A stretch of DNA of 64,000 nt, from positions 1-64,000 of IMG/VR virus record IMGVR_UViG_3300024054_000362. One strand, 5' to 3'. A program made the position numbers and the translations under genes. Position 1 is the first letter of the stretch; each line of letters begins with the position of its first letter. This document shows, one piece after another, positions 30,176-59,678 of this stretch. Below the pieces are notes generated by a model that saw only the letters and a list, made by a program, of their open reading frames with translations, was not told the origin of the DNA and ran no database searches.

Positions 30176-30222
30176 CTGCGTAGACCGATCGCGGGAGCGA
30201 TCATCCGTGATAGCTTCTGTGG

Positions 30223-33630: not shown

Positions 33631-33632
33631 AA

Positions 33633-33708: not shown

Positions 33709-33711
33709 TAG

Positions 33712-33785
33712 CGCCCCTGGAAGGACTTGCACCTCCGGCCCTCCGATCCGTAGTCGGATGCTCTAATCTGCTGAGCTACAGGGGC
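33712..33785 (-). tRNA. tRNA-Arg(ACG)
   Basis: TCCGA-CTACGGA-TCGGA arm. Confidence 0.9.
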
Positions 33786-33883
33786 ATGGTAACAGGATAA
33801 GCTCGATTCAGAAACTGCCGCGCCCTGTTGAACGCGACGTTTGAGTCTTCTCTCGTGAGCCGTTGTACGAACCCCGAGTGTTG

Positions 33884-33957
33884 TGCCGTCGGAGGGACTC
33901 GAACCCTCAACCTATCGGGTAAAAGCCGAATGCTGCTACCAGTTGAGCTACGACGGC
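33884..33957 (-). tRNA. tRNA-Lys(TTT)
   Basis: TCGG-CTTTTAC-CCGA arm and canonical D/T loops. Confidence 0.85.
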
Positions 33958-36914: not shown

Positions 36915-37071
36915 GGAGTCTCCCTCGACGGTGGTGATCGCTGCTGCGATCGCCAATCGATCGCTGATGCGACTGCTCCGGGCCACTCTAAGGGTGCAAT
37001 ACCGCGTTGTCAACGCGGGTTCGATCGCATCCGCGATTGACCTTCCAACAAGCAGTGTGTACGACCACGAG

Positions 37072-37521
37072 ATGGGGATGATCATCACCGCGCCGGAGCG
37101 AACGTTCACCCGTGCTCGTCGGTGCGCCAACTGCACGCACTTCGAGACCGGCGAGCCTTCTCACAAGCTGTGGAACATCCATCGGAAGGCTCGGATCGAC
37201 GACTACATGCGTACGGCGCCTGTCGCGCGTCTCGCCGACATGGAGAACCCCAGGTGGAGTCCGGCCGAGATGCAGGACGCACGGCTGCAACAGCTCCACC
37301 AGATGGATCAGCTAATCGCACACGGTGGTGCGGGTGTTTGTCGCAAGGGCAAGCGGGACAAAGCTGACGGCGGTCCGTCTACCGACTTCATCCACGCCGA
37401 CTTCCTGTGCGATCGCTGGACAGGTATCGATGGCGTCTCAACCATCACCGAAGGCCATGACGACAAGCTCGGAGAGGAGCTTCACGAGATCGCCGACGAT
37501 CGCGCGGTGAAAAAGGGCTAG
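37072..37521 (+). CDS. Cys-containing hypothetical protein
   Basis: RRCANCTHF..VCRK..FLCDRW. Confidence 0.6.
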   Translation: MGMIITAPERTFTRARRCANCTHFETGEPSHKLWNIHRKARIDDYMRTAPVARLADMENPRWSPAEMQDARLQQLHQMDQLIAHGGAGVCRKGKRDKADGGPSTDFIHADFLCDRWTGIDGVSTITEGHDDKLGEELHEIADDRAVKKG

Positions 37522-40104: not shown

Positions 40105-40827
40105 TCTTCTCGAAGCGGACACGGGTATCGACCGGTTCCAACGCCGTCGCACGCACCTGCGCTACCGCAGCCGAGCACACTGCAACGGATCAGTTCCTTC
40201 GCTTCGTTGACGTCTTCGTTGTCGTTGAGACCGTTCGCCTTGGCGAGCTGAATGAGCGCACACAGCGAACGCTGAAGGGTCAACAGGTCCGTGCTCTCAG
40301 CTTTGGTCGTGTTCTCGTCGTTGTACACGGTGAGGCCGTTGTTCTCAGCGATGACGATGAGAGTACGCACGAAGCGTCTCACCGTTTGTAGGTACTCACC
40401 GTCGTCCATGAGAACGACGCCACGATCGTACGTACAGATTCGTCCGAAGGTCATCAGCGGCCCGTCATTCGATGTAGTTTGCGCGTCGCGCGGTCCTGCA
40501 TGGCTTGGAGCCCGTCAGGTTGATGACCTCGCGGACAGCAAGCATCGCAGGCTTGACGAAACATCAGGTCGTCGAGGTCCCACGCAGGCTGCCGCGCTTC
40601 GCAACCATCCACGTGACCCGTCCCGTCGCAGTCTTCACAGTCTGGATCGGTCAGGTCGACGACCTCTAGCTTGTTTTTCTCGTCGGGATCGGCCATAGAG
40701 TCGACAGTCTAGCAAGTTGCTCTTGACTTGTCGCGAACAGAACGATAGAACGACGGTTGCCTGGGATCTGTCGGTGGTGTTGCTGCCAGACCCTTTCATC
40801 GAAGGCGCGAGGCCTTCGTGTCATGTC

Positions 40828-41472
40828 ATGGCGACAAACAAGAACGATAACCTCAGACCAGCCGAACGCTTCGCTCGCGCGGAACGCGCCAAGTCGGCAC
40901 GTACACAATCTCTTCGCGTCGTTTGTCCGGCCTGTCACGTTGCGCCCTGGAAGCCGTGTCGCACCGTCGTCGGTCTCAAATTTCACAATGAGCGATCGAC
41001 AGTTCATTCTGCGCGAGTTTTTGCGCTTGGACATCGTCGCTATAAATCCAACCGCGGAAGCGAGCGTCTGCAGTGCTCCCGTTGCCGCCGTGTACGATCG
41101 GCGTCGTTATTTCGTTGGCAGAATCGGTCGAAAGGACGTCGGCATCCTCAGTGTCGTGATTGCGCCAAACACTCCAATGCGCGTGACCGGCAACGAAACC
41201 GCGCAAGCTATCGCGACGCCAAGAAGACCTCGCAACGCGAGTTGAGGGAGATCGTCAAGAAGGCCAAGGACGTCCCGTGTATCGATTGTGGCAAGACGTA
41301 TCCGCCGTACGTCATGGATTTCGATCATCGACGTGGCGTCAAGGTCGCCAAGGTTTCTGCACTCGTGTACGCCAATTCTGTTCGGCTACTTCTCGAAGAG
41401 ATCGAGAAGTGCGACGTCGTCTGCGCCAACTGTCACCGCGAGCGAACGTTTGGAAAGAAGGTTAAGCCGTGA
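40828..41472 (+). CDS. Phage HNH endonuclease-like protein
   Basis: PCIDCG..MDFDH..EEIEKCDVVCANCHRERT. Confidence 0.8.
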   Translation: MATNKNDNLRPAERFARAERAKSARTQSLRVVCPACHVAPWKPCRTVVGLKFHNERSTVHSARVFALGHRRYKSNRGSERLQCSRCRRVRSASLFRWQNRSKGRRHPQCRDCAKHSNARDRQRNRASYRDAKKTSQRELREIVKKAKDVPCIDCGKTYPPYVMDFDHRRGVKVAKVSALVYANSVRLLLEEIEKCDVVCANCHRERTFGKKVKP

Positions 41473-43343
41473 ACAAGGAAAATCTCGGACCTGCAGAAAA
41501 GATCATTCAGTCGATCCTAACTTACAGCGATCACATGATGCACAACCGCCCCGGCGCCGTGACGCCCGACGGTCGGACGAATGTCGGCGTCCGCTGGGAA
41601 CCGGTCACGCACAAGGTCGAAGACGTCAACGGCACGCCGACCAAGGTCGTCTACAAGCTGACCAAGGTCGGCAAGAAGCAGTCGAAGATCAAGCTCGGCA
41701 CGCTTCGCGCCGACGGCAAGATCATGAACGGCGCGCCGACGCCAATCGCGGAGTACCGCGACGCAGGTCTTTTCCCCGAGGTCGCGGCGTGGTTCTACCG
41801 TCAGGTCGCCGACGTATGGAAGCTCGACAACGAGTTTGCCGCGCGCTGGGCGAGCTTCGCCTTCGGCCAGGAGCACCGCGACCTCAAGGTCGTGCTGGCT
41901 GCGTTCATGCTCGTGCAGTCCCGCAAGGGAGAGCCCGTGCGCGATGCCGGCAAGGTCGTCTTCTACGACGAGGACTTCCGCGACGTCGGCGAGGCCATGA
42001 TGTTGATCCGTCGCAAGGACGACAAGGATCTCAACCCGAAGCTCCTACTACGTATCCGCGACGTACTCGCGCTGCCGGCAGTCGCGGCGATCAATCGCGA
42101 GCTGGGGTTCGGCATCTCGACGCGCAAGCCGTGCCTTGGGCGCTGGGAGGCCGTCGTCCAGAAGTGGCTACGTCACCGCGAGGAGAACCCAAGGCTCCTC
42201 GACGGCTTGGTCAAGGCAGGCTTCCGCTCTACCGTCATCGAGCTGGCGAAGCGTGTTGGCTACAAGCCCGAGACGCCAAAGTTCTTCGAGGCGCTGCGCT
42301 GGAAGCAGAAGCAGGCCGACGACGGTCGCCGTCAAATGATGATCGGCGTCGACGTCGCGAAGGCGGAGTCGTGGGCCGGCCTTTCCGAGAAGGACATCTG
42401 CGAGAAGATCACCAAGGACAAGCCGGACTGGAAGCGCATCGTCGGCATGCTGCCGTCGAGTGTCGGTGTCACGCGCGCCGTGGTCGCTGCCGCGATCGAG
42501 GCGAAGGCGCTCTCCGACCGCGACCTCATCATCGCGTCGTCGACGCTCGAAGAGCTGGGCCTCCTCGACGTCGCGTCGATCCGCGCACGCTGGGAGAAGG
42601 CGGTCAAGAACGCCGAGGACACGCGCGCCGCCAACATCGCGCGCAACGTCAAGAGCAAGGACATCAAAGAGAAGCTCGTCGAGGGCGCGGACGCGGCGGT
42701 CAAGAAGGCCGTCGAAGAGGTGGTGAAGCACCTCCGTATCTACGCCTTCATCGACAAGTCGGGATCGATGCAGCAGTCGATCGAAATGGCAAAGAGCCAC
42801 ATCGCGAAGCTCCTACAAGGCTTCCCGCTGGATCGCATCCACGTCGCGGTGTTCGATACGTCCGGGCGTGTGATCGAAATCAAGCACGCGTCCACCAAGG
42901 GCGTCGAGAACGCGTTCAAGGGCATCACCGCAGGAGGTGGTACTGAGCACGCATCCGGCATTCGCGCCCTCGAAGGCTTCAAGCCGAAGGACGACGAGGA
43001 CACGCTGTTCATCTTCGTCGGCGACGAAGCCGAGAGCAACCACAAGACGTTCGAGGGCGCCGTTCGCAACTCGGGATTGCGTCCAACCGCGTTCGGCATG
43101 CTCCGCGTCCCCGGCGAGAACGGTGACTCGGTACAGCGTACGGCCGCAAACCTCGGCATCCCGTGCTTCATGATCGACGAGAAGACCTTCGAGGACGCGT
43201 ACGCGATCCCACGGACGGTTCGAAACCTGATCGCAGCGACACCGGTCGGTCAGGTCAAGGTCGTCACGGCGGCGCAGCAGCGCATGACGCTCGTCGATCA
43301 GATTCTGAAGACGGAGCTGCTCAAGAAGCCGACGTGGGCTTGA
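41469..43343 (+). CDS. vWA-domain protein with helical TROVE/Ro60-like N-terminus
   Basis: MIDAS motif IDKSGSM, GGGT and FVGDE. Helical N-terminal region. Confidence 0.7.
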   Translation: MNKENLGPAEKIIQSILTYSDHMMHNRPGAVTPDGRTNVGVRWEPVTHKVEDVNGTPTKVVYKLTKVGKKQSKIKLGTLRADGKIMNGAPTPIAEYRDAGLFPEVAAWFYRQVADVWKLDNEFAARWASFAFGQEHRDLKVVLAAFMLVQSRKGEPVRDAGKVVFYDEDFRDVGEAMMLIRRKDDKDLNPKLLLRIRDVLALPAVAAINRELGFGISTRKPCLGRWEAVVQKWLRHREENPRLLDGLVKAGFRSTVIELAKRVGYKPETPKFFEALRWKQKQADDGRRQMMIGVDVAKAESWAGLSEKDICEKITKDKPDWKRIVGMLPSSVGVTRAVVAAAIEAKALSDRDLIIASSTLEELGLLDVASIRARWEKAVKNAEDTRAANIARNVKSKDIKEKLVEGADAAVKKAVEEVVKHLRIYAFIDKSGSMQQSIEMAKSHIAKLLQGFPLDRIHVAVFDTSGRVIEIKHASTKGVENAFKGITAGGGTEHASGIRALEGFKPKDDEDTLFIFVGDEAESNHKTFEGAVRNSGLRPTAFGMLRVPGENGDSVQRTAANLGIPCFMIDEKTFEDAYAIPRTVRNLIAATPVGQVKVVTAAQQRMTLVDQILKTELLKKPTWA

Positions 43344-43637
43344 TGAAGGTCGCTGCACAACATCACGCACGGATCGGGAAGCGCTTGCAGTTGCTTCTCG
43401 ATTACCTGAGCACGAACCAAATCGCCACACTGGAGGAGCTTCTCCAAGTTGTGTACGAGGAGGGACGCTCTCAAGGCTATCGCGAAGGCAACCCCGGCCA
43501 CGACGACGACTGAACGATTTCGCCTCGGATCGGAAGGAGCAGTGCCGCGAGGGCGGAAGGACAGCTTGCCCAGCAACCGGACGAGATAAAGAGGCGACCG
43601 ACAACTGAAACGGAGGTGATTGGGCAACGTTATTTTT

Positions 43638-43686
43638 GGATTCGAAGCTGGCGCGTCTTCAACGAGTTCGATTCTCGTCGAATCCA
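43638..43686 (+). ncRNA. Anticodon-less mini tRNA-like RNA
   Basis: GGATTCG/CGAATCC-A acceptor and ACGAG-TTCGATT-CTCGT T arm, with only a 17-nt D-like hairpin between them. Confidence 0.6.
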
Positions 43687-43699
43687 CGAAAGGTAAAGG

Positions 43700-44284
43700 G
43701 TGATGTTGAAGTTCTCGGAGCTGGATCTGCGACAGTTCGGCGACACGGTGCAACTCGTGGGTGGTGTTTGGGCTGACGACGGCAACGCCTACGTTCTCTA
43801 CTTCCCGGAGTACGTACGCGACGCTTTCGAATTCGTCGATGTCGCGATGGACCACGACGCCTGGAAGGCACTCCTTCGGCAGACCGACCTCGTCGAGACG
43901 GAGGTCTTGGCGAAGGCGAAGAACGGCGAGTTGTTCACGGCGATCTTGCGCAAGTGCGAACGCCAGATCTCACAGCAGGTCTCGTGGAACGTCTTTCGTC
44001 GCGACGGCTACCGCTGTCGTTACTGCGGCAACGACAAGGTTCCGCTCACCGTCGACCACGCCATCCTCTGGCAGAAGGGCGGCCCGTCGATCGAGGACAA
44101 CCTCGTCACGAGCTGCAAGAAGTGCAACAAGATCCGAGGCCAGACGCCGTATGTCGAGTGGCTACAGCACAAGTACTACCTCGATGTCTATCGCAACCTG
44201 ACACCAGAGGTGCGGTATCAGAACGAGATGCTCGTCGACAAGCTGACGAAGATCCCGACGATGCTTCACGTTCGGGAGCGGTGA
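43700..44284 (+). CDS. HNH endonuclease domain protein
   Basis: VFRRDGYRCRYCG..LTVDH..GG..NLVTSCKKCN. Confidence 0.85.
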   Translation: MMLKFSELDLRQFGDTVQLVGGVWADDGNAYVLYFPEYVRDAFEFVDVAMDHDAWKALLRQTDLVETEVLAKAKNGELFTAILRKCERQISQQVSWNVFRRDGYRCRYCGNDKVPLTVDHAILWQKGGPSIEDNLVTSCKKCNKIRGQTPYVEWLQHKYYLDVYRNLTPEVRYQNEMLVDKLTKIPTMLHVRER

Positions 44285-44287
44285 GCG

Positions 44288-44815
44288 ATGGGTCTCTACG
44301 CCAATGATCGCCGCGAGCTGACGCTCGTCATCGACACCGACGAGTACTCGGGCAACTTCGAGCGGCAGATGTTCGCATTCATCTTCGGACGGGACGACAC
44401 ATCCGACGGCGGAACGCGAGATCTCTCGTACTATCGCGACGTCGCGATCGAAGCGGGCGTCGTGGACATGGACGGCCTCCTCGAAGAACGCATCAACGAT
44501 CCCGGCGACGACGGATATCACTTCGCGTACGTGACCATCTGCACGACGCCAGGGTTCTTCAACGTCGACGGAGTCCACTACGAAGAGAATTCGTTCAACT
44601 GCGAACGCTTCCCTCCTGACGGACGTCACCCGGCGTTCCAAAGCGTCGGCGTCTTCTTACAACGCGAACCGACCGACGACGAGCTGAGGCTCATCAAGGC
44701 GCGCGCAAAGCTGTTCACCGACTTCCCAAGGAGGCACGCTTGGGACGCGCGTCCGAAGATCCTCGGATTTCGTCTTCTCATGTGCCAGACGCTCTGGTCT
44801 TCGAGGTCGCTGTGA
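44288..44815 (+). CDS. Hypothetical phage protein
   Basis: LVIDTDEYSGNFERQM. Confidence 0.6.
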   Translation: MGLYANDRRELTLVIDTDEYSGNFERQMFAFIFGRDDTSDGGTRDLSYYRDVAIEAGVVDMDGLLEERINDPGDDGYHFAYVTICTTPGFFNVDGVHYEENSFNCERFPPDGRHPAFQSVGVFLQREPTDDELRLIKARAKLFTDFPRRHAWDARPKILGFRLLMCQTLWSSRSL

Positions 44816-45238
44816 CTGCAGACAAGAAGAATCTCTGCGGCGGTCAGGTGCGGAACAGCGAGTACCCGTGCGACTTACCGCGCTTCCATGATGGCGGCTG
44901 CTTCAGCAACTTCGCAGCGGATCTGTACCGACGCGACCACGCGCCACCGCCACCGCCACGGAAGACGCTTGCAGAAGCATTCGCGAAGCCCCTCGACTTC
45001 GACGGCGCACAGTTCGAACTGGCGAAATGCCTCGGCCTCATGCCCAACGTGCCGTGGGATCCAGTTGGACACAAAGCACTGTTCTGGGCGAGCAACCTGT
45101 TCGGGAATCGACTGTACGACATCCTCGAAGCGCTCGTGAGAATGGGCGCCCTTCATCAGAACGACGAACGACAGTTCAAGTGGAACGACGCGTTCGATTA
45201 CCAAACGACGGCAGAAATCGAAGACGACGAGTAACTTC

Positions 45239-46192
45239 ATGAGCTGGCGCGATCTACTTCAAGCCGAGAACGAGACCATCATCCTGCCGTGGATCGGTGG
45301 TCGTGAGCTGCGTTCGCTCTCACGCACGTGGACGATCGCCGGTGATCTGCCTCGCGAGCACGGTTGGTATCGTTTCAAGATTCTCAAAGGCCGCACAGCG
45401 ACGGTCCAAGTCGGCATCGGCCCCGACGGCCTCACACACGCGACGTGTGCGCACTTCTCGAACGGCTACCTCATCGGCGATCGGTTCGCCGCTGACGACT
45501 TCTCGCCACGCTTCGGTCCTGACGGTCTTCCCATCTTCAGCTGGTTGCCGCGCGTCCACCTGATCGACAACGGTATCGACCGGTTCGCACGTATCAGCGT
45601 TGGCATGATCTATCCCGGCGGCCCGATGATCTTTGGGGTGCAACAGATGCCCCTCGGTCCCGAAGATGCTGTCCTTCGCGCCTACGAGGACCGCAAGACG
45701 ACCGTCGACGACATCAAGGGCGTCACACCAGCTCTCAACACAGCCTTCTACATGGAAACACGCCAGCGAGCCGAAGCCGAACGACGCCGAGCCGAGCTGG
45801 AGAAACGTCGCGCCGAAGAAGAAGCCAAACGCGCCGCCGAAGAACGCCGACGACAACTAGTCGAGAAGCTCGGCGACGGCGCAAGCCGACGGCAACTCGC
45901 CAAAGTCGACTTCGGCGAAGCCGCCCGCGCAGCTCTGGCGGTGGGCGGCGCGGAGTTGCTCGACTGGAAGGTCTCACGACAGGCTCGCGAGTTTACCGTC
46001 CGCTTTCGATTCGACGGTCAACGCTTCGAGTGTGTTTGCGACGAGAACCTGCACGTGCTTGATGCGGGAATTTGCTTGATCGATCATCGTACGGGCATCA
46101 AGGGTGATACGTGGTTCACTTTGGAGTCGCTGCCGGCCGTCGTTCGCGAAGCGATCGATACCGGCAAGCTCGTACGATTCAGACACGTATGA
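45239..46192 (+). CDS. Hypothetical protein, candidate E2-like component of the Ubl system
   Basis: Central coiled coil and a C-terminal domain with a single-Cys motif VLDAGICL..D..FTLESLPAVVREA. Context suggests the role. Confidence 0.5.
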   Translation: MSWRDLLQAENETIILPWIGGRELRSLSRTWTIAGDLPREHGWYRFKILKGRTATVQVGIGPDGLTHATCAHFSNGYLIGDRFAADDFSPRFGPDGLPIFSWLPRVHLIDNGIDRFARISVGMIYPGGPMIFGVQQMPLGPEDAVLRAYEDRKTTVDDIKGVTPALNTAFYMETRQRAEAERRRAELEKRRAEEEAKRAAEERRRQLVEKLGDGASRRQLAKVDFGEAARAALAVGGAELLDWKVSRQAREFTVRFRFDGQRFECVCDENLHVLDAGICLIDHRTGIKGDTWFTLESLPAVVREAIDTGKLVRFRHV

Positions 46193-47396
46193 GAACCAAG
46201 ATGAACGGCCTCGCGACCGACTTCGTTGGCGACTTCATTGAGCTGCAAGCGCCCGTGCACACATCCGAGAGGGAGCCCTCTTGGAGAACACACGCTCGCG
46301 GTCTTGTTCGTGCGGTCACGTCCGGCATCGATGGATCGTTCCTGTGGTTCTGGTTGCAAAATGGCGACGAGGTCGTTCAAGTATCGACGATGAGCAACTA
46401 CGGCGAACCGTGTCGCATCATCATCGTCACGAAAGGGAGTCAGACATGATGCCCAACTACGATCCGCACGCCGAGCGTCGCCTCTACTTCAAGCAGCTCG
46501 CAGACGCGTTTCGAAACGTCGTCGCTCGACACGCACAAAAACGTCTCGTGCCGGGATTGATCCCCGAACCTGCAAGCTCGGATAGCATCATCCCCGGCGA
46601 GGTCGTGGTCCTCAACCACGTCCTGTGGCTCTGTGATGAAGTCGATCGACTGATCCGTCTCGACCTATACGGCGAAGCCGTCGAACACATCGGCACGATC
46701 CGCGGCGTGTTGTGGACGACGGGTGTCATGTCGCTTTCAGAATCGAAAGCCCTGACGAAGGCCTGTGCGACGTGTGGCAAGCCCGGACATCGTCCACAAG
46801 ATCACGCCGGATGGAACCCCGACGAGGAAGGACACGGCTGATGAGCGTTCGCATCGGAGAAGTGAAACCGCGTCTCGACCACACCCCAACTGCTGCCATG
46901 CACGTCCAAGCCAGCCGTGCCGGCGTCGAGTTGCACTGTGATCCAAAAATCACACTCGAACCGACGGAGGCGCGCAACGCCGCCGCGTTGCTTGTCCGTG
47001 CCGCCGAAGAGGTCGAGATGATGCGCAAGCGTTTTTCGGGACAACCGTGAACGACGACCCACAACAGCTTGCACAACAGGCCGCCGAGTTTCTGCAACGC
47101 GGGCGCGAGAAGCTCCTTGCGAAGCTTGCGAGTGGCGAGACGATCAGCCTTTTCGACGCTCTTGAGTCAATCGGCGCTTTCGTCGACGAGATCTGGAACG
47201 GCGAATGGGAAGGCCCGATCTTGTTTCACGACGTTCGCGGCAAGCAGGTACTGATCCTCGTCCAAACTACCGACCACGACGCGTTCGCCGCCTGGCGCGA
47301 AGCGCACAAAAACTTCTCCGGGGAAGAACTGCAAGACTTCGCTCGGCAGGCGCTCATCGCCATGGTCTCGCGTCCAATCGACCCGAAGGACTTCGC

Positions 47397-48065
47397 GTGA
47401 ACGACGACTCCAACCAGTGGACTGACGAGCGCGTCGCCGAGCAGTTCAAGCTCGAAGTCCGTCAGCGTTTCGAAGAAGAGAACGCTCGATGGCGCGCTCG
47501 CGAGACCGCAGATCTCGATCGTCTGGCCAAGGCACCCGACTGGGAAGATCGCATGCGCAACCCGAACTTCGCTGCAGGCATGGCCGTCCGCGACAGCTTC
47601 TTCTGGGACATCTACAGTTCATCGACGATCAACTACGAATACAACTCCGTCCAGGTTGTCTTGCCCAACGGCTTCGCGATCTACGCCGACTTCGTTGACA
47701 TGTTCGGTCGCACTTCTGTCGGATGGGGAACCCCGAGCGTCGGCGGCAAGATCATCGACGGTGAATCGTACACCGTCATCGATGTTCTGCTCGTCGACTA
47801 CTGGGACGACAAGCGTGCCGCCGCGTGGCCCGAACGACAAAGGACGTTCCTGATGGGACTCACACAAATCCAGAAGCTCAAGTTGAGCATGGAGATCTTC
47901 GATCGGTACCTGGAGCCTGGTGTCAACGACGGCGGCGTACTGCCGTGCGCCAACGAGTTGCACGTCGTTGGTGTTCACTGCGCGGCGCTTGGTGGCGATG
48001 ACCGTGCGAAGCTCGAAGCGATGGGTTGGGAGTGGGACGACCGCGTCTGGAAGCTGCCCCTATGA
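47397..48065 (+). CDS. Hypothetical protein
   Basis: GTG overlap with the upstream stop. Protein-like composition. Confidence 0.55.
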   Translation: MNDDSNQWTDERVAEQFKLEVRQRFEEENARWRARETADLDRLAKAPDWEDRMRNPNFAAGMAVRDSFFWDIYSSSTINYEYNSVQVVLPNGFAIYADFVDMFGRTSVGWGTPSVGGKIIDGESYTVIDVLLVDYWDDKRAAAWPERQRTFLMGLTQIQKLKLSMEIFDRYLEPGVNDGGVLPCANELHVVGVHCAALGGDDRAKLEAMGWEWDDRVWKLPL

Positions 48066-48500
48066 ACCTGACGCCCGTCGAACTGGAGGGCCTACGCGTG
48101 ATCACCAAGGCACATCTCGGAGAGCTGCACCACGCCCGCGGCTACCAAGGCGTCGCCGATGGCGAGCTTCGTCGACAAATCGATCTTTACGAAGGCGTCC
48201 TGACCAAGATCAAGAACGCGCTCGCTGGGAAATGACACCAACCATGAAGACGCAAGCTGAGATTGATGCAGGAAACCAGTACGGTGCCTACCAACAAGGT
48301 TGGCGCGCGGGTGCGGCGTTCCGCGCGATGGATCTCAAAGCTGCCGAGCATGAGAGCTTCCTGATCCGCGACGCCTACAACCAGGGCTACACCGACGGTC
48401 GTCACGCTTACAACCAGGCGATGCACAACGCTGCGCGCAAGTACAACTACAAGATCAGCGTGCTGCGCTTGATGGACGACGCCAAATCCGAGGAGAAACC

Positions 48501-48926
48501 GTGACGCGCTACTTCATCGACACCGAGTTTTTCGACAAGGGCCCCAACGACCTCCACCTGATCTCGATCGCGCTTGTCTGCGACGACGGCCGCGAGCTGT
48601 ACCTCTGCGACAGTGAGTGGCTCTGTGCCGACGGCACACCTGACGCCGTCATGGCAGACGACTGGCTTCGTGCGAACGTCTTCCCGCACTTGCCGCACTG
48701 CAAGTGCCCTCCGCCACCCGAGCCCATCCAGGGACGTCCGTCGTGTCACCGCGGCTCCGCACCGTCATCATCTCCGCGCCATGCAGCCAGTCGCCATCGT
48801 GGATGGTCGATGCTATCGTCCGAGGACGCCTCCGCGAGTTTCGCGAGTAAGAACGCGTGTTTACTTTGCACCGAAGGCGGTCTTGCGTCAGAGGTCAGAC
48901 CCGTGCGCAAGTATCTGCCCCGATGA
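48501..48926 (+). pseudogene. Truncated DEDD 3'-5' exoribonuclease (Rv2179c-like)
   Basis: RYFIDTEF..LISIALV.DDGRELY..DWLRANVFPHL. Similarity is lost after ~48720. Confidence 0.6.
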
Positions 48927-49540
48927 TCACCGCCAAGCAGGCTACAGGAATGACGAGCCAGGACATGAACGTCGCCGTCGCAGGGAGCAAGCCGCTTGAT
49001 GATCTCTTCTCGATCATCAACGCGAAGGCATACCGCGAAGGTGACTTCACCCTGGCTTCCGGCCGCCGTAGCAGCCACTACTTCGACGGCAAAAAGGTTC
49101 TGTTCGACCAGCAAGGCTCCCGTCTGTTCGCGAGTTGGCTTCTGGAACAGTTGTGGAAGCTCGACGCCCTTCCCACCGCGATCGGGGGCCTTGAGATCGG
49201 CGCGATACCTATCGCGTGCACGACCATGGATCGCGCGACCTTCCCGCTGAAGGCATTTGTCGTGCGCAAGCAGGCGAAGCAGCACGGCACCGGGAATCTG
49301 GTCGAGGGTGACCTGAGCCCAGCCGATCGAGTGGTGGTTGTCGATGACGTGATCACGACCGGCGAATCGACTATGAAGGCGATCCGCGCGGTGAAGGAGA
49401 TCGGCGCTCAAATCATCGGCATCTACTGTCTCGTCGATCGTCAAGAAGGTCACTCGGAAGAGTTCGACTCGTACGCGGCGCTTTTCCACCCCGCGTTCAC
49501 GCTTGAAGAGTTCACCCGACGTCGTCGGGAACGCTCGTGA
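48923..49540 (+). CDS. pyrE: Orotate phosphoribosyltransferase
   Basis: FTLASGRRSSHYFD, GGLEIGAIP, VRKQAKQHG and VVVVDDVITTGES. Confidence 0.9.
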   Translation: MITAKQATGMTSQDMNVAVAGSKPLDDLFSIINAKAYREGDFTLASGRRSSHYFDGKKVLFDQQGSRLFASWLLEQLWKLDALPTAIGGLEIGAIPIACTTMDRATFPLKAFVVRKQAKQHGTGNLVEGDLSPADRVVVVDDVITTGESTMKAIRAVKEIGAQIIGIYCLVDRQEGHSEEFDSYAALFHPAFTLEEFTRRRRERS

Positions 49541-49893
49541 GTCCACGCGACCTCGCCGACACACTTCGCCGTGGCCTCGCACCCGACAACCTCGACACGG
49601 CGATCGATGCGTTCGACGTTTGGTCGGAGATCGATCCCGCAGTTGGCAGCACGATCGCAAACATCCTTCGGCAAGTTCGGGGACGTTGGGATGAACCAGT
49701 TCCGCAGGACGAATTTCGGCGCGTGACCGACGTAGTCACGCGGGCACTTGAGATCCTTCGCAAGACCGAAGAGGAGCAGGGTTATGTTCCAACGGCTGAC
49801 CTCGTCGACTTGATTCGATCGTACAGTGCTCCGTAACGTGAGCGTTCACGCTCGCGAGATCATCGACGACGACCTGATGAAAGGACTCGGCCT

Positions 49894-50304
49894 ATGATGG
49901 AAACCGGCGTCGTTATCAACACCAACGGCGAGCCTGTCTACTGGCACGAGCCCAACGGCCGTTCGTCAGGATCGCTACCCGACAGCCGCGACCTGTGGAA
50001 CGTCCTTTGGCGCGCTCACCAAGACGGCTGGCTTGCAGGCGTCGCGCACTCGCATCCAGGTTCAGGTGTTCCGCACCCATCGCACGAAGACACGACCACC
50101 TTCATCGCGATCGAGAAGGCACTCGGGCGCGCCCTCTCGTGGTGGATCACCAGCGCTGACCGACTCATCCTGATCAACCGCTCGAAGGACAGCACCTTCG
50201 GCCACATCGTGTACGCCATTCGAGAGATCGATGTCGAACGCGAGCCTGCATGGGTCGTCGAACTGCGGCGGCGGTCAGGCATCGTCGTTCCCGACCGTTT
50301 GTAG
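49894..50304 (+). CDS. JAB/MPN (JAMM) metallo-isopeptidase
   Basis: N-terminal E plus HSHPGSGVPHPSHED (HxHx7Sx2D). Confidence 0.85.
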   Translation: MMETGVVINTNGEPVYWHEPNGRSSGSLPDSRDLWNVLWRAHQDGWLAGVAHSHPGSGVPHPSHEDTTTFIAIEKALGRALSWWITSADRLILINRSKDSTFGHIVYAIREIDVEREPAWVVELRRRSGIVVPDRL

Positions 50305-50698
50305 AAAGGGTGCCGTGATCAAGTCAAGCCAGCTAAGGAGCGGATGCTATGCGAGTCGAGTCGAAGCAGCCGTTCTAAAAAACAGATTCTTGATCGTTGA
50401 TTTCGCCATCATTGCGGGTCCGGGTGCGCACGGGAGAAAATTTCGTGAACGTTTCAGAATTCCCCCCGACAACACGCCCGAGCCAACTTCAGACGACACC
50501 CCGGAAACGTTGTCGAAGGATCAGATCGCGAGGGTTTGGTTAGTAATGTTAGCCTTCGCTACCGGACTCGTAAGCGATGGAGATGTTGACGGCGGTTTTC
50601 GACCTTCCGATCTGGTCGGAAAATTTGTCTCAGCAGAGATCGTAAAAAATCGCGGGTTACTCAGACTTCACCCTCCTGATGATCCTGCCTTGTGAAGT

Positions 50699-50720
50699 AG
50701 CTCTTGACTTGTCAAGAGCT
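50699..50720. promoter_or_regulatory. Perfect inverted repeat overlapping a TTGACT -35 box upstream of the Ubl gene
   Basis: AGCTCTTGAC-TT-GTCAAGAGCT. Confidence 0.6.
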
Positions 50721-50791
50721 ACCAGCTAACCTCATCGAGAACTGTCAACTGGGGAGCAACGAACGCTCCTCTCCGTAGGATGAGGTGACGC

Positions 50792-51073
50792 ATGGCGAAC
50801 GAGCTGGTACAAGTGATCCGACCCGACGAGGCGCGCGTGAACATCACGTACGCTGGACAGAACGGCGATCTGCCGCAACCTGTGTTTTTCGAATCGGCCG
50901 ACGGTGACGTCAAGGCCTGGGTGACCGAAGCCGTCCGTAACGGCGGCGTCCCCGGCATCCGTCGTGACGAAGCGGCGAGGTTCGACGACTTCGTGGTCGA
51001 TCGATTCCCGCCGAACGAGCAGTACACGTACAACCGGATCCAGGTCCGTCCCAAGACGGCGTTCGGTCGGTAG
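50792..51073 (+). CDS. Putative ubiquitin-like (beta-grasp) protein
   Basis: 93 aa with a strand-strand-helix-strand pattern, ending RIQVRPKTAFG-R. RBS GAGG. Flanked by the JAB and ThiF genes. Confidence 0.55.
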   Translation: MANELVQVIRPDEARVNITYAGQNGDLPQPVFFESADGDVKAWVTEAVRNGGVPGIRRDEAARFDDFVVDRFPPNEQYTYNRIQVRPKTAFGR

Positions 51074-52264
51074 CAATCCGTGTCCGACGATGCCCCCGAT
51101 AACGCCCATGGTTGGCAGGTACGCAGCGTTGCTGAGATGGCCGATGAGTTGGACGCCGAGCACCGTGCCGAGGTGCGCGCCCTCATCGAAGGTAAAGGTA
51201 GGTGGCAACTCCTTCCAGATGATTGCGCACTGGTCTTCCAGGGGAACTCCCAGAGCAAACACGATCGGCGACACGCCGGATACTGGATCCAGCTCGACGA
51301 GGTTTTGACTTCGTCTCAAATGTTGGACTGGATTTTCCAAATCGGGCGCAAGAGTTGGGGACGTGGTGCAGCCGTGGCTGAACTGATCGAGGCATTTCAA
51401 CTGACACTCAACCCACAAGGCACACTCTGTTCGTGTGGCGCATCCAAACAACTCACAGCCGAACAGGTACGCGCGCTCATCAAAAAACTTGCCAAACTCG
51501 GGGAGCCGCTAGTATGACTCCAAGCGAACAACTTTTGGGCGACGGTCGTGCTCTCCAGGACGTCCTGAACGCCGTCTACCACGGCGCCGTTCAGGAGTGC
51601 GAAGGCCGCGAACACGCCGGCCACACGATCGGAAACGGTCATCACATGGCCCAGACGATCGTGAAGAACGTCGAAGACGAGCTGCTTCGACGCGGTCTCT
51701 TCGTGAAGGAACACGATACGTCACCTCACGAAGAGCGTGCACAGAAGTTCCTCGCCGAGGTCCACAAGATCTTCGTCGAGACCATCAAGATGTCGACCGA
51801 AGCCGACGCTGCAGTCTTCAAGCGCGTCGTCTACGGGCTCACGAGCACGCTGCGCGATCTGTTTCGCGATGGTGCCTATGCCGCCCGAGAAGAGTTGAAG
51901 GCTACGCTGCGTGAGCGCTTCGGCGCACTGCTCAACGGGCTGTGAACCGTGATCTACCACGGCGTCGTCGTCCACTGTGACTGCCGAACGCTCTGGGGGA
52001 CGCTGTTGTTCGCGCCCGACGATGACGGCCGCGCAATCATCGACGCCATCTCGGCGGCCACAATCGCCCAAGCTTCTCGCGTCGCCAAAAGGCTACGCCG
52101 CGACAACCGTGGCGTCATCGCCGAGCTTCCGTTTCATTCCACCGCAGTCGAAGGCGGTGGAGGGACCTTTGTCTCAACGCCGGGGGACCTCGTCCAGGTG
52201 ATTCTCAACGCAGACTATCGTCTCGTTGGGGTACGCTACTCATCAAGGAGCTAGGAGAATCAAC

Positions 52265-53011
52265 ATGCAGAAATGGATTTGGGGATCGATTCTGTGTGCC
52301 TGTCTCGTCGCGTGCTACGGGTCGACGCGCAACCCGGAAGCGTGCTGCGAGACCATCGAGGAGTGCATGCGGCTCGGAACACCCGACGCGATCCTCTGTG
52401 AGGTCGGCGCGTGCGTGAACTTCAAGTGCGTCGAGAACACGAACGCCTGTGACAGCGCCGACGATTGCGAGACCTTGTTGTGCGTGAACGGTACGTGCAT
52501 GCCGCCAGAGCCGCCACCTGTCGATGCGCCTCCTGAAATTGCCGCATTCGACATCGCGTACCCGAACGTATGGCGGCGATCTGATTTTCTGATCGACCCA
52601 TTCTCGTTGTGCATGATGATCGTCAACACGACTGACGTGCCGCTCAACTTGTCGTCGCTCGCGATCAAGAGCATCGCCGACGATCATCCCGTCGCCAACG
52701 TCCGGCTAGTCATCAAACCGGACCTGAACATCACCATCCAACCACACAAGGCAGGCGGTTTCGCGAACGGCCTCTGCGGCGAAAAGCTCGTCGACTCGGG
52801 GTTGGTGTCGGAAACACGCGTCGATACGATGACGAGCTACGTCGACTACGAAATTCAAGACGCGCCCGCCGGCACGTACGACATCACGACGAACGCTGTC
52901 TTCACCCTCGACAACGTCGACGTCCCCGTCCAGTTCGTCACCCACATCGTGGCGGGACCGGTCGTCTATGCCGATCCTGAACAAGCCACGCGCGTGAAGT
53001 TGACCCGCTGA
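52265..53011 (+). CDS. Cys-rich lipoprotein
   Basis: Lipobox-like LVAC and Cys-rich repeats. Confidence 0.65.
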   Translation: MQKWIWGSILCACLVACYGSTRNPEACCETIEECMRLGTPDAILCEVGACVNFKCVENTNACDSADDCETLLCVNGTCMPPEPPPVDAPPEIAAFDIAYPNVWRRSDFLIDPFSLCMMIVNTTDVPLNLSSLAIKSIADDHPVANVRLVIKPDLNITIQPHKAGGFANGLCGEKLVDSGLVSETRVDTMTSYVDYEIQDAPAGTYDITTNAVFTLDNVDVPVQFVTHIVAGPVVYADPEQATRVKLTR

Positions 53012-53399
53012 GGTCGTTCGTGCGAGACGCTGTCGTATGGGCAGTGTCTTTCACATCGTGATCTGGACTGAGGGCGTTACAGACATCGTTTTCGAATTGG
53101 GCACCGAGGGCGAGCTTGCCACGCGCGAGGTCGCCGAAAAGGTCGCAGGAGCCTACCGCGAGCTTCTGGATATGGTCTACGCACGGAACGGCGGGGCCGA
53201 ACATGCCTTCCGATCGCGTGTTGGGATTCTCGAAATCCCGATGCCAGATCCCCGCGTGCGACGGCCCGTGCCGCGCACCGATGTCGAGGAAATCATGAAA
53301 GAAGCCCGCGAACTCCTCCTACGCAGAAAGCTGCGTAGTACGACTACGTAGCAACTTAGTCTTGACTAGTTTATGTATCGACGTCACTCTCACGACGTC

Positions 53400-54008
53400 A
53401 TGTATCGACAGACCGTGATTGTTGTCGGAGTCGGAGCCCTTGGTTCTCACGTGGTTCAGCTTATACGCAACGAAGCAAACCTCTTCGTGATCGACTTCGA
53501 TCGCGTCGAATCCAAGAACGTCCTCAGCCAGTTCCACGGCAAGCCCAACGTCGGCAAGGGCAAGGTCGCGTCGATCGGCCAGACCATGAACTTCCTGTGG
53601 GGCGTCAAAGTCGACGGCGCCAACGCCAAGCTCGTCGACATCAACGTCGACGTCCTGCTCAACCGCGACTTCCGCTGGCCGGAAGGTATCGTCCGCAAGG
53701 CGGACCTCGTCATCGACTGCCTCGACAACGGAGATGCTCGTCGACTCGTCCAGGCGTTCGCACGCGCACAGAAGATGCCGTGCCTTCACGGCGCGCTCGC
53801 CGCCGACGGCGGCTTCGGCCGCGTGATCTGGGACGAGAACTTCGTCATCGACGACAACACGGCCGGCGCAGCAACGTGCGAGGACGGCGCACATTTGCCG
53901 TTCATTGCGGTCGTCTCCGCCCTCATTGCTCGTTCCGCTCAGGAATTCCTCCTGCGCGGGAAACGATACGGTTGGTCGATCGCGCCTACTCGTATCGAAA
54001 TGGTGTAA
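53400..54008 (+). CDS. ThiF/E1-like adenylyltransferase
   Basis: VVGVGALGS, IDFDRVESKN..Q, GKGKV, DLVIDCLDN and ATCEDG (Cys). Confidence 0.9.
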   Translation: MYRQTVIVVGVGALGSHVVQLIRNEANLFVIDFDRVESKNVLSQFHGKPNVGKGKVASIGQTMNFLWGVKVDGANAKLVDINVDVLLNRDFRWPEGIVRKADLVIDCLDNGDARRLVQAFARAQKMPCLHGALAADGGFGRVIWDENFVIDDNTAGAATCEDGAHLPFIAVVSALIARSAQEFLLRGKRYGWSIAPTRIEMV

Positions 54009-54048
54009 TCGTCTCAACCAGTCGCAGTACCAACCAAAGGATCGAAAC

Positions 54049-54435
54049 GTGAATCAGGGATCGCTTCAGAAACTCGTCAACAACTTCGTCGATCAGCTCC
54101 ACGATCTCTGGAAGCAGGAAATCGTCGACGCCCTTGGCGGGAAGGTCGGCTCGCTCAAGAACGGCAACGGTGTCGGTTACGGTCGCGGCGTGAAACGTGC
54201 CCCCGCAGATCTCGACCGACTCGCCGATCGGTTCGTCGACTTCGTGAAGACGAACCCGCATCTCCGCATCGAGCAGATCAACAAGCAGCTCGGCACGACG
54301 ACGAAGGAACTGATGTTGCCGATCAGAAAGCTCATCGCCGAAGGCCGTCTCAAAGCCGACGGCCAGAAGCGCTCGACGACGTACGCCGTGCCCGGCGAGA
54401 AGAAACCCGCCGACAAGAAGCCCAAGAAGCGCTAA
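54049..54435 (+). CDS. Winged-helix nucleoid-type DNA-binding protein (myxobacterial type)
   Basis: KR...L..L....V..NP.LRIEQINKQLG..TKEL.LPIRKL....GQKRSTTY. Confidence 0.7.
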   Translation: MNQGSLQKLVNNFVDQLHDLWKQEIVDALGGKVGSLKNGNGVGYGRGVKRAPADLDRLADRFVDFVKTNPHLRIEQINKQLGTTTKELMLPIRKLIAEGRLKADGQKRSTTYAVPGEKKPADKKPKKR

Positions 54436-55977: not shown

Positions 55978-56053
55978 ACACGCATAGCTCATCGTAGAGC
56001 GTCGCCCTGACAAGGCGAAGGTTGGGGCCTCAAAACCCCTGCATTCAACACCA
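55978..56053 (+). pseudogene. Degenerate tRNA-Val(GAC)
   Basis: TAGCTCA..AGAGC D arm and TCGCC-CTGACAA-GGCGA are intact. Acceptor stem and T loop are disrupted. Confidence 0.55.
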
Positions 56054-56295
56054 GCATCCCTCCTCGACGGCTTCTTTTTGTCCCAAAGTCCAAGCGACAT
56101 CGCTTCGGCGATCTAGCCCACGCGGAGGGACACCTTTTTGCGGTCGCCAGCGCCGACACGACTCCGGTTCTCCAACTGGAATCTTCCCGTGAGAAGCTGG
56201 ATGGAGCGGTATCAGCACCATCACCGGTACAAGCCGCGCAGATCGAGACTACCACCCGGTTTCGACCCGCGACTCACGTACGAAGCTGATGTTTT

Positions 56296-56370
<75 letters not shown>

Positions 56371-57170
56371 CTCCAAGACAGAGATCGTCATGGCGCGCCC
56401 TCCACACGAAGAACATGAGCATCGCGAGCGGGTTTACCGCGAGCTAGAGGCTCTCGAAGCGCAGCAGGTTGCGAAGTACGGCGTGCCGTACGAGAAGCTC
56501 CCTGAAGTGTTACGCTACCCGCCACCGGAGCATCCACAACGATCGACGTCACGCCGCTTCGACGACATCTCGATGCGTCGTGTCTGGCGTCATCGAACGC
56601 TCCGACTCGCCTCCCGCACTTCATTCGGTTGGCGCACACAGCGTCAGCAGTATCTCGCCAAGCTCGAACAGATCCGCCGTGCCGAGATCGCCGTTCGCAA
56701 GCTCCGCACGAAACACACTGGACGCGGCAAGCCGCTCGATCGTAAAGCTCATGTACATGCACGTGAGCGAATCGAAGCGCGCGAATGGCGCGACGACTTC
56801 TAGCACCGAGGGTCGATCGTGATCATCCAAGGCGGCGCCGTCCTCTGTAGCGGCTGGATGAAACGCGGAACGCCGTTCGCGGTTCCGGGCTTCCGTGACA
56901 AGCACGAGCCCAAGCCAGAACGTGTACTGTGCGACAACATCGCGCGTTACATCAACGCCCGAGGCGAGCTGTGCTGTTCGATCTGTCCCCTCAAGGAGGG
57001 CATCGACTCGATCAAGCTCGACGACGTGCCGAAGCTTCTTGCTGGAGCACGACAACTAATCGCGCTCTGTGCCGACCTGCCCCTCCTCGACTCGATGCGC
57101 TCTGGAGGCGGTCCGCATCTCGTTTCGACACTCATCGAGCTACGCAGCGTCGTTCAACGCGAGGTGAAGT

Positions 57171-59284: not shown

Positions 59285-59357
59285 GCTGGTGTAGCCCAAC
59301 GGTAGCGGCAGCGTGTTTAAGCCACGCGCGGTGCCGGTTCGAGTCCGGCCACCAGCA
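59285..59357 (+). tRNA. tRNA-Leu(TAA), short variable arm
   Basis: GCGTG-TTTAAGC-CACGC arm, A73. Confidence 0.85.
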
Positions 59358-59360
59358 CGC

Positions 59361-59435
59361 GTCACGGTAGCCCAACCTGGTAGCGGCACAACCTTGAGGT
59401 GGTTGACAGTCCGGGTTCGAATCCCGGCCGTGACA
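59361..59435 (+). tRNA. tRNA-Leu(GAG), short variable arm
   Basis: CAACC-TTGAGGT-GGTTG arm. Confidence 0.85.
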
Positions 59436-59440
59436 CGAGA

Positions 59441-59516
59441 GCCGACGTAGCCCAACCCTGGTAGCGGCAATGCACTCAGGATGCATCCAGTGCCGGTTCG
59501 AATCCGGCCGTCGGCA
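59441..59516 (+). tRNA. tRNA-Leu(CAG), short variable arm
   Basis: ATGCA-CTCAGGA-TGCAT arm. Confidence 0.85.
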
Positions 59517-59521
59517 CGAAC

Positions 59522-59599
59522 GCCATCGTAGACCAACTGGAAGGAGTCACCGGTTTTAGAAACCGACAAGTGCAGGTTCGAATCCTGTCGATGGCACCA
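59522..59599 (+). tRNA. tRNA-Leu(TAG), short variable arm
   Basis: CGGT-TTTAGAA-ACCG arm, encoded CCA. Confidence 0.85.
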
Positions 59600-59600
59600 A

Positions 59601-59678
59601 GCCGACGTAGCCCAACCTGGTAGAGGCGGCGCATTCAAGACGCGCGCGTTGGTGGTTCAAATCCACTCGTCGGCACCA
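59601..59678 (+). tRNA. tRNA-Leu(CAA), short variable arm
   Basis: GCGCA-TTCAAGA-CGCGC arm, encoded CCA. Confidence 0.8.

Follow-up and report, generated by a model that had tools for sequence, protein, structure and literature searches.

We identified a strongly conserved five-gene module, found in hundreds of uncultured huge phages and in Myxococcota chromosomes, that encodes a predicted ubiquitin-like protein (Ubl), the JAB protease that trims it, an E1-type enzyme inferred to activate it, and two novel partner proteins. This combination has apparently not been described before. The module was found in a 64,000-nucleotide window (positions 1 to 64,000 of IMG/VR virus record IMGVR_UViG_3300024054_000362), in which a first-pass annotation, based on the sequence alone, had proposed that five genes dispersed over 12.5 kb form a virus-encoded ubiquitin-like conjugation system. 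That observation was confirmed, as all five ORFs are present on the + strand and form a functional unit, whereas the interpretation attached to it was only partly supported, for reasons explained below.

A conserved five-gene cassette

The five genes of the window are as follows.

41469-43343 (+): a 624-aa protein with a novel, highly conserved N-terminal region of about 410 residues and a C-terminal vWA domain with a complete MIDAS (D429, S431, S433, T492, D519)
45239-46192 (+): a 317-aa protein with an invariant Cys279 in a DAGICL motif, a candidate Cys-dependent carrier or ligase
49894-50304 (+): a 136-aa JAB/JAMM metallopeptidase
50792-51073 (+): a 93-aa predicted ubiquitin-like (beta-grasp) protein, made as a precursor and ending RPKTAFG-R
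53400-54008 (+): a 202-aa minimal MoeB/ThiF-type E1 adenylyltransferase, with an invariant Cys160 (TCExG; ATCEDG here) and no Zn-binding CxxC pairs

In the window, these genes are separated by ORFs without family matches, and by an HNH endonuclease (43700-44284) and a phosphoribosyltransferase (48857-49540). However, the grouping is far beyond chance. The same five genes, in the same order and on the same strand, occur in 8 of 8 loci found through the E1 and in 55 of 59 viral loci found through the 317-aa protein, often as a compact 4.1-kb operon, and 24 loci span 5.5 kb or less. The vWA protein gene is first in the cassette in 55 of 59 loci, and the gene for the 317-aa protein is always second. 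Nothing else within 10 kb on either side is conserved. Furthermore, the set persists in a very divergent lineage in which the Ubl gene has moved. Co-occurrence as a compact operon elsewhere had been named in advance as a test of the proposed system, and it is borne out by these loci; the 12.5-kb version in the window is the same cassette, intact but split by inserted accessory ORFs. Although the cassette is virus-encoded in the window, it is not virus-specific, because it is also chromosomal in Myxococcota metagenome-assembled genomes (MAGs), where it is a resident operon with host-like codon composition.

Properties of the five proteins

The E1 matches the Pfam ThiF family (E-value 3.7e-19). 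A longer ORF starts at an alternative upstream ATG at 53373, but 94%-identical relatives are 202 aa, and more than 2,400 relatives of about 190 aa exist. Its best solved relative is MoeB (7.6e-17), and its Cys aligns with the Cys of MoeB's LTCVEAG segment. All ATP/Mg residues are retained, and the GxGxxG motif, D32, D34, K55, D106, D109, N110, R114 and C160 are at least 97% conserved in 192 sequences. The adenylation site is intact and the Cys invariant, which supports the first-pass annotation on this point.

The JAB protein retains the full JAMM catalytic set (E3, H52-S-H54 and S63-x-x-D66). The Prok-JAB hit is sub-threshold for the window protein itself (E-value 1e-3), but the domain is found in 9 of 9 relatives (best 1.4e-5), and E3, H52, H54, S63 and D66 are at least 95% conserved in 63 sequences.

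An AlphaFold2 (AF2) model of the 93-aa protein (pLDDT 87) has a beta-beta-alpha-beta-beta topology of the beta-grasp type with a disordered C-terminal tail. The model has no statistically significant structural match (best Foldseek E-value 0.16), although the weak Foldseek hits are almost all ubiquitin-superfold domains. Its C-terminus carries an invariant RPKTx[F/Y]G motif, which is followed by 0-67 unconserved residues among 120 homologues and in the loci, and by a single residue (Arg93, after Gly92) in the window. It had been proposed that JAB removes this terminal Arg, and comparison of the cassettes supports this proposal. JAB has been lost at least five separate times, and in all 11 JAB-less cassettes the Ubl ORF ends exactly at the Gly, while 54 of 66 JAB-containing cassettes have a tail. 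As the remaining 12 of these 66 already end at the Gly, it is possible that JAB has a second role.

The 317-aa protein consists, in an AF2 model (pLDDT 87), of an N-terminal all-beta domain (about residues 13-135), a charged Glu/Arg/Lys-rich helix of about 45 residues (164-209) and a C-terminal alpha-beta4-loop-alpha domain, whose loop carries Cys279. In 194 distinct sequences, C279, G277, D290, E296 and R218 are 100% conserved, but C267 (86%) and H283 (85%) are not invariant. Since the latter two are possible Zn ligands, this pattern favours a reactive Cys over a structural one. The first-pass annotation had proposed this protein as a non-canonical E2. However, we detected no E2/UBC similarity by Pfam, PDB profile search or Foldseek, and indeed there is no Pfam, NCBIfam, PADLOC or PDB match and no significant Foldseek hit, the weak Foldseek hits being dsRBD-like. 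An E2-like function is therefore only an inference.

The vWA protein matches Pfam VWA_2 at residues 428-507 (E-value 5e-6), as do 21 of 21 diverse relatives, and a PDB profile search returned only vWA domains, with ITIH4 at 1.7e-5. Its N-terminal region matches only 210 proteins among 1.84 billion representatives and carries many invariant polar residues (H22, H25, R27, D138, D169, R171 and others). The proposed vWA/TROVE assignment is not supported in its second half, as no TROVE signal was found by Pfam in 21 diverse members, in PDB profile searches or in distant relatives.

Predicted function and alternative readings

The explanation we favour, at a probability of roughly 55% and from in silico data alone, is that the cassette is a self-contained module that activates and conjugates a Ubl. 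In this view, the 93-aa protein is made as a precursor and JAB removes whatever follows the invariant [F/Y]-Gly, a step that is shown by the comparative evidence above. The E1 would then adenylate the exposed Gly carboxylate and probably take the Ubl onto Cys160, which we infer from homology and intact catalytic residues. It is likewise an inference that the activated Ubl is passed to, or used by, the 317-aa protein through Cys279. This protein would be a functional analogue of an E2 or a Cys-dependent ligase, and its ER/K-type helix would hold the Cys domain at a fixed distance from the N-terminal beta domain. That the vWA-MIDAS protein selects the target, or is the target, is speculative. 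Two further observations favour conjugation. The penultimate residue of the mature Ubl is aromatic rather than Gly, unlike the Gly-Gly of ThiS/MoaD-type sulfur carriers and like Atg8/Atg12/UFM1-type modifiers, and no sulfur-transfer, thiamine, Moco or PP-loop gene is conserved nearby. However, the general premise of the first-pass annotation, that E1, JAB and Ubl genes without cofactor-synthesis genes mark protein conjugation, is too strong, because JAMM-trimmed sulfur-carrier Ubls exist (QbsE/QbsD), and the E1 in our cassette is closest to the sulfur-carrier type (MoeB/Uba4/ThiF) rather than to Cap2 or Bub E1s.

A sulfur-carrier pathway is thus not excluded, although we consider it unlikely. 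The adenylated Ubl would be converted to a C-terminal thiocarboxylate that delivers sulfur to a metabolite or to tRNA, as in TtuB/TtuC, Urm1/Uba4 or QbsE/QbsC/QbsD, with Cys160 and/or Cys279 acting as persulfide relays. This reading is favoured by the E1 profile, by the alignment of the E1 Cys with the MoeB/ThiF crossover-loop Cys, by the JAMM trimming of a Ubl precursor in thioquinolobactin synthesis and by the location of phage copies inside tRNA arrays. On the other hand, no rhodanese, cysteine desulfurase, PP-loop ATPase or acceptor enzyme is conserved with the cassette, no member matches the ThiS/MoaD models, the C-terminus is not the Gly-Gly typical of sulfur carriers, the conserved vWA and 317-aa proteins have no place in such a pathway, and the chromosomal copies have no tRNA context.

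Slightly less likely still, conjugation could be E2-independent, as in archaeal SAMP/UbaA, Thermus TtuB or Urm1, with the E1 alone activating and transferring the Ubl. The 317-aa and vWA proteins would then be substrates or regulators, for example proteins switched on or assembled by Ubl attachment. The E1 is of the MoeB/UbaA type used by E2-free systems, no E2 fold or family is detectable in the 317-aa protein, and, as only these five genes are conserved, the target may well be encoded inside the cassette. However, the absolute invariance of Cys279 and its surrounding residues looks like an active site, and the N-terminal region of the vWA protein also carries many invariant polar residues.

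The first-pass annotation also suggested that the virus may use the system to modify host proteins or counter Bil/CBASS-type defence. A counter-defence device that mimics or hijacks host Ubl-based immunity (type II CBASS Cap2/Cap3, Bil), for example by conjugating or sequestering defence proteins, is very doubtful, and we found no evidence for it. The cassette is common in huge phages and the E1 matches PADLOC Cap2 E1-E2 models at 1e-13, but this match covers only the generic E1 domain, and solved Cap2 ranks far below MoeB. Furthermore, the other four proteins match no defence model, there is no CD-NTase or Bil-type E2, and the cassette is also a resident chromosomal operon. Finally, a chance neighbourhood of unrelated genes, which the 12.5-kb spread in the window might suggest, is already refuted by the synteny data, the divergent lineage and the covariation of JAB with the Ubl tail.

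Relationship to known systems and genomic setting

Archaeal SAMPylation (UbaA E1, SAMP Ubls, HvJAMM1), the Thermus TtuB/TtuC/JAMM system and eukaryotic Urm1/Uba4 also use a minimal MoeB-type E1, a small beta-grasp protein activated at a C-terminal Gly and a JAMM peptidase, with no canonical E2 or E3. However, those Ubls end in Gly-Gly, belong to the ThiS/MoaD family and double as sulfur carriers, whereas here the end is [F/Y]-Gly, no ThiS/MoaD signal is found, and the vWA-MIDAS and Cys279 proteins are obligatory partners. Bil (BilABCD) and the '6d' operons (Ubl, JAB, E1 and an E2-like protein lacking the HPN His; Iyer et al. 2006, PMC1779556) similarly have separate genes for Ubl, JAB, E1 and a Cys-bearing fourth protein, and a Ubl whose C-terminal extension is removed to expose Gly. 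Their E2s are recognisable UBC-fold proteins, which the 317-aa protein is not; in addition, the E1 here is much smaller (about 190-200 aa), a vWA protein is added, and the His four residues after the Cys is only 85% conserved. Type II CBASS Cap2/Cap3 shares an E1 domain together with a JAB peptidase, but the cassette has no CD-NTase, no E2 domain fused to the E1 and no effector, a free Ubl replaces the CD-NTase C-terminus, and solved Cap2 is only a distant match (4e-7 against 8e-17 for MoeB).

In the vWA-MoxR 'FtsH ternary' conflict systems with a full Ubl-conjugation set (Kaur et al. 2020, PMC7159879), a vWA-domain protein is likewise genomically coupled to JAB, E1 and Ubl components, and these systems are enriched in multicellular bacteria such as Myxococcota. 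Those systems have MoxR and FtsH AAA+ ATPases, a RING-type E3, a Ubl-E2 fusion and caspase-like effectors, none of which is present here. The eukaryotic modifiers Atg8/Atg12 and UFM1 are made as precursors whose aromatic/aliphatic-Gly end is exposed by a protease (Atg8 ...F-G|R; UFM1 ...V-G|SC) and are activated by a non-canonical homodimeric E1 (Atg7, UBA5), and UBA5 is among the solved relatives of our E1. However, there is no sequence relationship between the Ubl or the Cys protein and Atg8, Atg3 or UFC1, and the processing protease here is a JAMM metalloenzyme, not a Cys protease.

The module lives both in Myxococcota chromosomes and in their presumed huge phages. In the phages, though not in the chromosomal copies, it usually sits inside same-strand tRNA arrays, and this location hints at co-expression with the phage's translation-related genes or action on the translation machinery.

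Gene content of the window and conservation of the five-gene cassette

The 221-kb IMG/VR contig IMGVR_UViG_3300024054_000362, whose first 64 kb form the window, has in this stretch about 60% GC and a content typical of a huge phage, including Cas8c/Cas7 genes, DNA methylases, a GH25 endolysin, a dCTP deaminase and at least 13 tRNA genes. The first-pass annotation had pointed to five + strand ORFs, encoding a vWA protein, a 317-aa protein with a DAGICL Cys motif, a JAB protease, a 93-aa candidate ubiquitin-like protein (Ubl) and a minimal E1, and this observation held, since all five are present on that strand with their motifs. The E1 most likely starts at 53400, because relatives that are 94% identical are 202 aa long. 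Between the five genes lie ORFs with no family match, plus an HNH endonuclease and a phosphoribosyltransferase. The other features of the window that bear on the analysis, or that were observed alongside it, are as follows.

61-2562 and about 2740-6215: type I-C CRISPR-Cas parts, Cas8c/Csd1 (E 2e-26) and Cas7 (E 3e-53), followed by a long CRISPR-like array of at least 37 repeats of about 36 nt ending in GGATAGAAAC, spaced about 72-74 nt apart, with unusually heterogeneous repeat stems
28645-33957 (- strand), 55978-56371 and 59285-59678 (+ strand): tRNA-gene arrays
34314-37136 (- strand): a 940-aa ORF with no Pfam match, in a stretch of raised GC (0.66) and strongly negative AT skew, directly next to a five-tRNA cluster
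40717-41472: a member of a multi-copy family carrying a Phage_zn_bind_8 zinc-finger domain
43080-43097: an internal motif of the vWA protein (residues 538-543) that resembles the Ubl C-terminus
43700-44284: an HNH homing-type endonuclease gene, inserted between the vWA gene and the 317-aa gene
45728-45865: a predicted long helix of the 317-aa protein (residues 164-209)
48857-49540: a phosphoribosyltransferase
53905-54435: the ORF after the E1, with a weak DDRGK hit

To determine whether the five genes belong together, we searched eight viral loci found through the E1 by tblastn with all window proteins from 39-58 kb. Only the five candidates are shared, and they occur in all eight loci in the same order and on the same strand. 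An all-against-all clustering of ORFs found no sixth conserved gene within +-10 kb. The DDRGK hit is sub-threshold and not conserved elsewhere, and was thus dismissed. A second, independent sampling through the 317-aa family gave 59 viral loci from contigs of 13-619 kb, of which 55 have all five genes in the order vWA, 317-aa, JAB, Ubl, E1. In the other four, one gene was not found within the stretch retrieved (for example, locus L022 is cut off just after the Ubl gene). The cassette spans 4.1 to 13.6 kb with a median of 5.8 kb, and 24 loci span 5.5 kb or less, so that a co-occurring and often compact arrangement, which had been set beforehand as a condition for the five genes to form a system, is indeed found elsewhere. 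With 12.5 kb, the window is near the dispersed extreme, and it thus carries an intact cassette that has been pulled apart by inserted accessory or mobile ORFs. HNH fragments related to the one in the window occur in viral loci L003 and L009, which probably explains part of how the cassette becomes dispersed.

A very divergent low-GC phage-like contig, L098, still has all five components (L098:7643-11632), although there the Ubl-like gene has moved in front of the vWA gene, giving the order Ubl-like, vWA-like, Cys protein, JAB, E1. Its Ubl-like protein ends in ...PETTAG-I, and its Cys motif is EAGFCI. A search for Rosetta-stone fusions of the components returned only two short metagenomic fragments, which are not convincing. 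Among 50,697 GenBank phage records, only one carries the genes, the metagenome-assembled Virus Rctr197k, and they are unannotated there. Public annotation offers no name beyond a generic adenylyltransferase.

Sequence features and predicted structures of the five proteins

The E1 belongs to the E1/ThiF/MoeB adenylyltransferase superfamily, matching Pfam ThiF at 3.7e-19 (69.3 bits against a cutoff of 28.1). A 44-sequence profile ranks Escherichia coli MoeB first (7.6e-17), followed by Uba4, ThiF, TcdA, SAE2 and UBA5, whereas Cap2 (4e-7), MccB and BubCD (2e-4) come much later. The ATP/Mg residues G10, G12, G15 (of GxGxxG), D32, D34, K55, D106, D109, N110 and R114, which align with MoeB, and the Cys of T-C160-E-x-G are at least 97-100% conserved in 192 sequences, and this Cys aligns with the Cys of the LTCVEAG segment of MoeB. 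The two CxxC pairs that bind structural Zn in MoeB/ThiF-type members are absent, and the protein ends before the second pair of MoeB; however, these pairs define the MoeB/ThiF subtype and not the superfamily. The family is large, with more than 2,400 hits of about 190 aa, on contigs up to 659 kb. PRTRC (ParB-related, ThiF-related cassette) membership is rejected, as PRTRC_ThiF scores 23 bits against a cutoff of 145 and no other PRTRC model is hit. Type II CBASS membership is likewise rejected, since only the E1 domain matches the Cap2 models and no CD-NTase or fused E2 is present in the cassette.

The JAB of the window scores 19.1 bits against the Prok-JAB cutoff of 25, but all nine relatives match Prok-JAB, with a best E of 1.4e-5. 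The metal-binding and catalytic motif is in place, with E3, H52, H54, S63 and D66 at least 95% conserved in 63 sequences. The spacing is HxH-x8-S in this clade, and the canonical x7 (HxHx7SxxD) in L098.

No sequence family matches the 93-aa protein. Its AlphaFold model (63-sequence alignment, pLDDT 87) has the beta-beta-alpha-beta-beta order of a beta-grasp fold with a disordered C-terminal tail. Foldseek gives no significant match (best E 0.16), although the weak list is almost entirely ubiquitin-superfold domains, namely the EccD Ubl, PI3K RBD, UBLCP1, SUMO, PB1, RA, DCX and the FAF1 Ubl. Among 120 homologues, the C-terminus is an invariant R-P-K-T-x-[F/Y]-G (the Gly being G92 in the window protein), followed by 0-67 unconserved residues, with any residue directly after the Gly. 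Some long tails, as in L013, L014, L005/L019 and P0337, carry a C-x-x-C-G motif (for example ...RCPNCG... or ...CSRCGN...), as if a small zinc-knuckle peptide were released by JAB cleavage.

Evidence on the role of the JAB came from a scan of 185,579 species genomes, which found the cassette in 28 MAG contigs. In eleven of them (L074-L080, L084, L087, L089 and L092) the JAB gene is missing, and the gap between the 317-aa gene and the Ubl gene is only 37-287 bp in the nine motif-matched loci and about 25-60 bp in L074 and L092. In all eleven the Ubl ORF stops immediately after the Gly, whereas 54 of 66 distinct JAB-containing cassettes encode a tail (Fisher p = 2e-6). On a maximum-likelihood tree of the 317-aa protein the JAB-less loci need six changes, and well-supported branches force at least five; this is therefore repeated, independent covariation. 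A JAB could be encoded elsewhere in those genomes, and 12 JAB-containing cassettes already end at Gly, so a second role such as deconjugation is possible. Nonetheless, we take the covariation as strong evidence that the JAB's essential role is to expose the Gly, and that the free Gly carboxylate is the business end of the protein.

The 317-aa protein has no match in Pfam, NCBIfam, PADLOC or PHROGs. None of 21 diverse members matches any E2 family (UQ_con, Prok-E2_A-E), or any other Pfam family, even at E<=1, and a 65-sequence profile finds nothing in the PDB. The AlphaFold model (pLDDT 87) shows an N-terminal all-beta domain, a 45-residue Glu/Arg/Lys-rich helix (164-209), and a C-terminal domain with two helices, a four-stranded meander, a loop carrying Cys279, and a final helix. 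The long helix, predicted as one continuous helix, resembles an ER/K single alpha-helix spacer between the two globular domains, and produced spurious YjdP/TolA hits. Foldseek against PDB and BFVD gives nothing significant, and no E2 appears in the lists; the weak hits are dsRBD-like. Cys279, G277, D290, E296 and R218 are 100% conserved in 194 sequences, while C265 is 98%, C267 86% and H283 85% conserved. This pattern argues for one functional Cys rather than a zinc site, and a structural Cys3His site is unlikely because C267 and H283 are not invariant. The arrangement of alpha(214-235), four strands (239-275), the Cys loop and alpha(298-308) recalls a minimal E2, and also the E2-like proteins of Iyer et al. 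2006 (row 6d), which lack the HPN His and have a His after the Cys. However, this is a resemblance in layout only; homology is not demonstrated, and E2-like function thus remains an inference.

In the vWA protein, the vWA domain and a complete MIDAS are solid: VWA_2 is found in 21/21 members (best 1e-8), ITIH4 is matched at 1.7e-5, and D429, S431, S433, T492 and D519 are invariant. The proposed TROVE/Ro60 identity is rejected at sequence level, with no TROVE hit for the window protein, for 21 relatives at E<=1 or for 10 distant relatives, and no Ro60 structure found with 7- or 45-sequence profiles. The 410-residue N-terminal region matches only 210 of 1.84 billion representative proteins and holds many invariant polar residues, which suggests an active or binding site. 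The protein also contains an internal, highly conserved P-x-A-F-G (RPTAFG here) that resembles the RPKTAFG at the C-terminus of the Ubl, which could be coincidence or a recognition mimic.

Genomic context in phages and in Myxococcota

In most viral loci (among them L003, L004, L006-L008 and L010), the cassette lies within or between large tRNA-gene arrays, with up to 43 tRNAs within +-10 kb. Of the 50 loci with full flanks, 31 have at least 10 tRNAs within this distance (up to 41), and across all 59 viral loci, 831 of 847 tRNAs are on the cassette's strand. In Virus Rctr197k, 31 tRNAs sit directly upstream of the vWA gene. The Phage_zn_bind_8 family is interspersed among the tRNA genes in the window and in L003, L004 and L006, with up to three copies per locus. 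Rfam found only tRNAs in the window and three compact loci, with no Y-RNA-like or other family.

However, the reason for this linkage is unexplained, and the association is not universal. The high-GC MAG loci mostly have no tRNAs nearby. Three of them (L092 on a 1.03-Mb contig, L088 and L074) are flanked by ordinary Myxococcota-type chromosomal genes, namely a STAND Ser/Thr kinase, DsbA, a radical-SAM protein, a hybrid histidine kinase and M49 peptidase, and the cassette genes there have host-like GC3 of 0.90-0.98. About two thirds of the MAGs are labelled Myxococcota, which also suggests the phages' hosts.

A candidate ubiquitin-like conjugation pathway

The comparative data show that the five genes are linked, that the JAB matures the Ubl at the Gly and that the adenylation site of the E1 is intact. 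In contrast, formation of E1~Ubl on Cys160, transfer of the Ubl to Cys279 or its use there (including any thioester), and choice of the target by the vWA protein are all inferred. The interpretation in the first-pass annotation, a Ubl-conjugation system with a TROVE/vWA protein, a non-canonical E2 and a possible role against host defence, was thus supported in part.

The main rival explanation is a sulfur-carrier pathway. The MoeB-like E1, the existence of JAMM-trimmed carriers such as QbsE, and the tRNA context are in its favour, but the [F/Y]-Gly end, the absence of any sulfur-transfer or acceptor gene, and the two extra obligatory proteins call it into question. A second rival is E2-independent conjugation, as in SAMP/Urm1/TtuB, with the two novel proteins acting as substrates. 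A counter-defence role has no specific support.

A further-reaching possibility, which we consider tentative, is a previously unrecognized Ubl-conjugation pathway in which a non-UBC protein (with Cys279 on a domain held out by an ER/K single helix) would replace the E2, and a vWA-MIDAS protein with a new enzymatic or recognition domain would replace the E3. This pathway would be shared between Myxococcota and their huge phages, and in the phages it would be deployed together with the tRNA arrays to modify the translation apparatus or another host machine during takeover.

We found no description of this cassette in the literature searched, which covered Iyer 2006, Kaur 2020 and the CBASS, Bil and Bub work. 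The core of E1, JAB and Ubl is familiar, whereas the other two components and the overall architecture are new. Ubl conjugation in bacteria and their viruses has only recently been shown experimentally (type II CBASS, Bil, Bub), and always as host defence. The cassette would be a fourth, compositionally distinct family, with a minimal E1, a JAMM maturase and a single-Gly Ubl (predicted to be ubiquitin-like from its model), plus two obligatory partners with no detectable relatives. It is abundant, with more than 2,400 E1-family and more than 800 Cys-protein sequences on contigs up to 660 kb, and it is carried by phages as well as by cells. The covariation of JAB loss with tail loss is a clean natural experiment that already fixes one step of the mechanism, and the position inside phage tRNA arrays gives a testable lead on why huge phages carry such large translation-related regions. 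If the Cys279 protein is a true carrier, it would be an independent invention of E2 function, and if the vWA protein picks the target, it would link MIDAS recognition to Ubl ligation.
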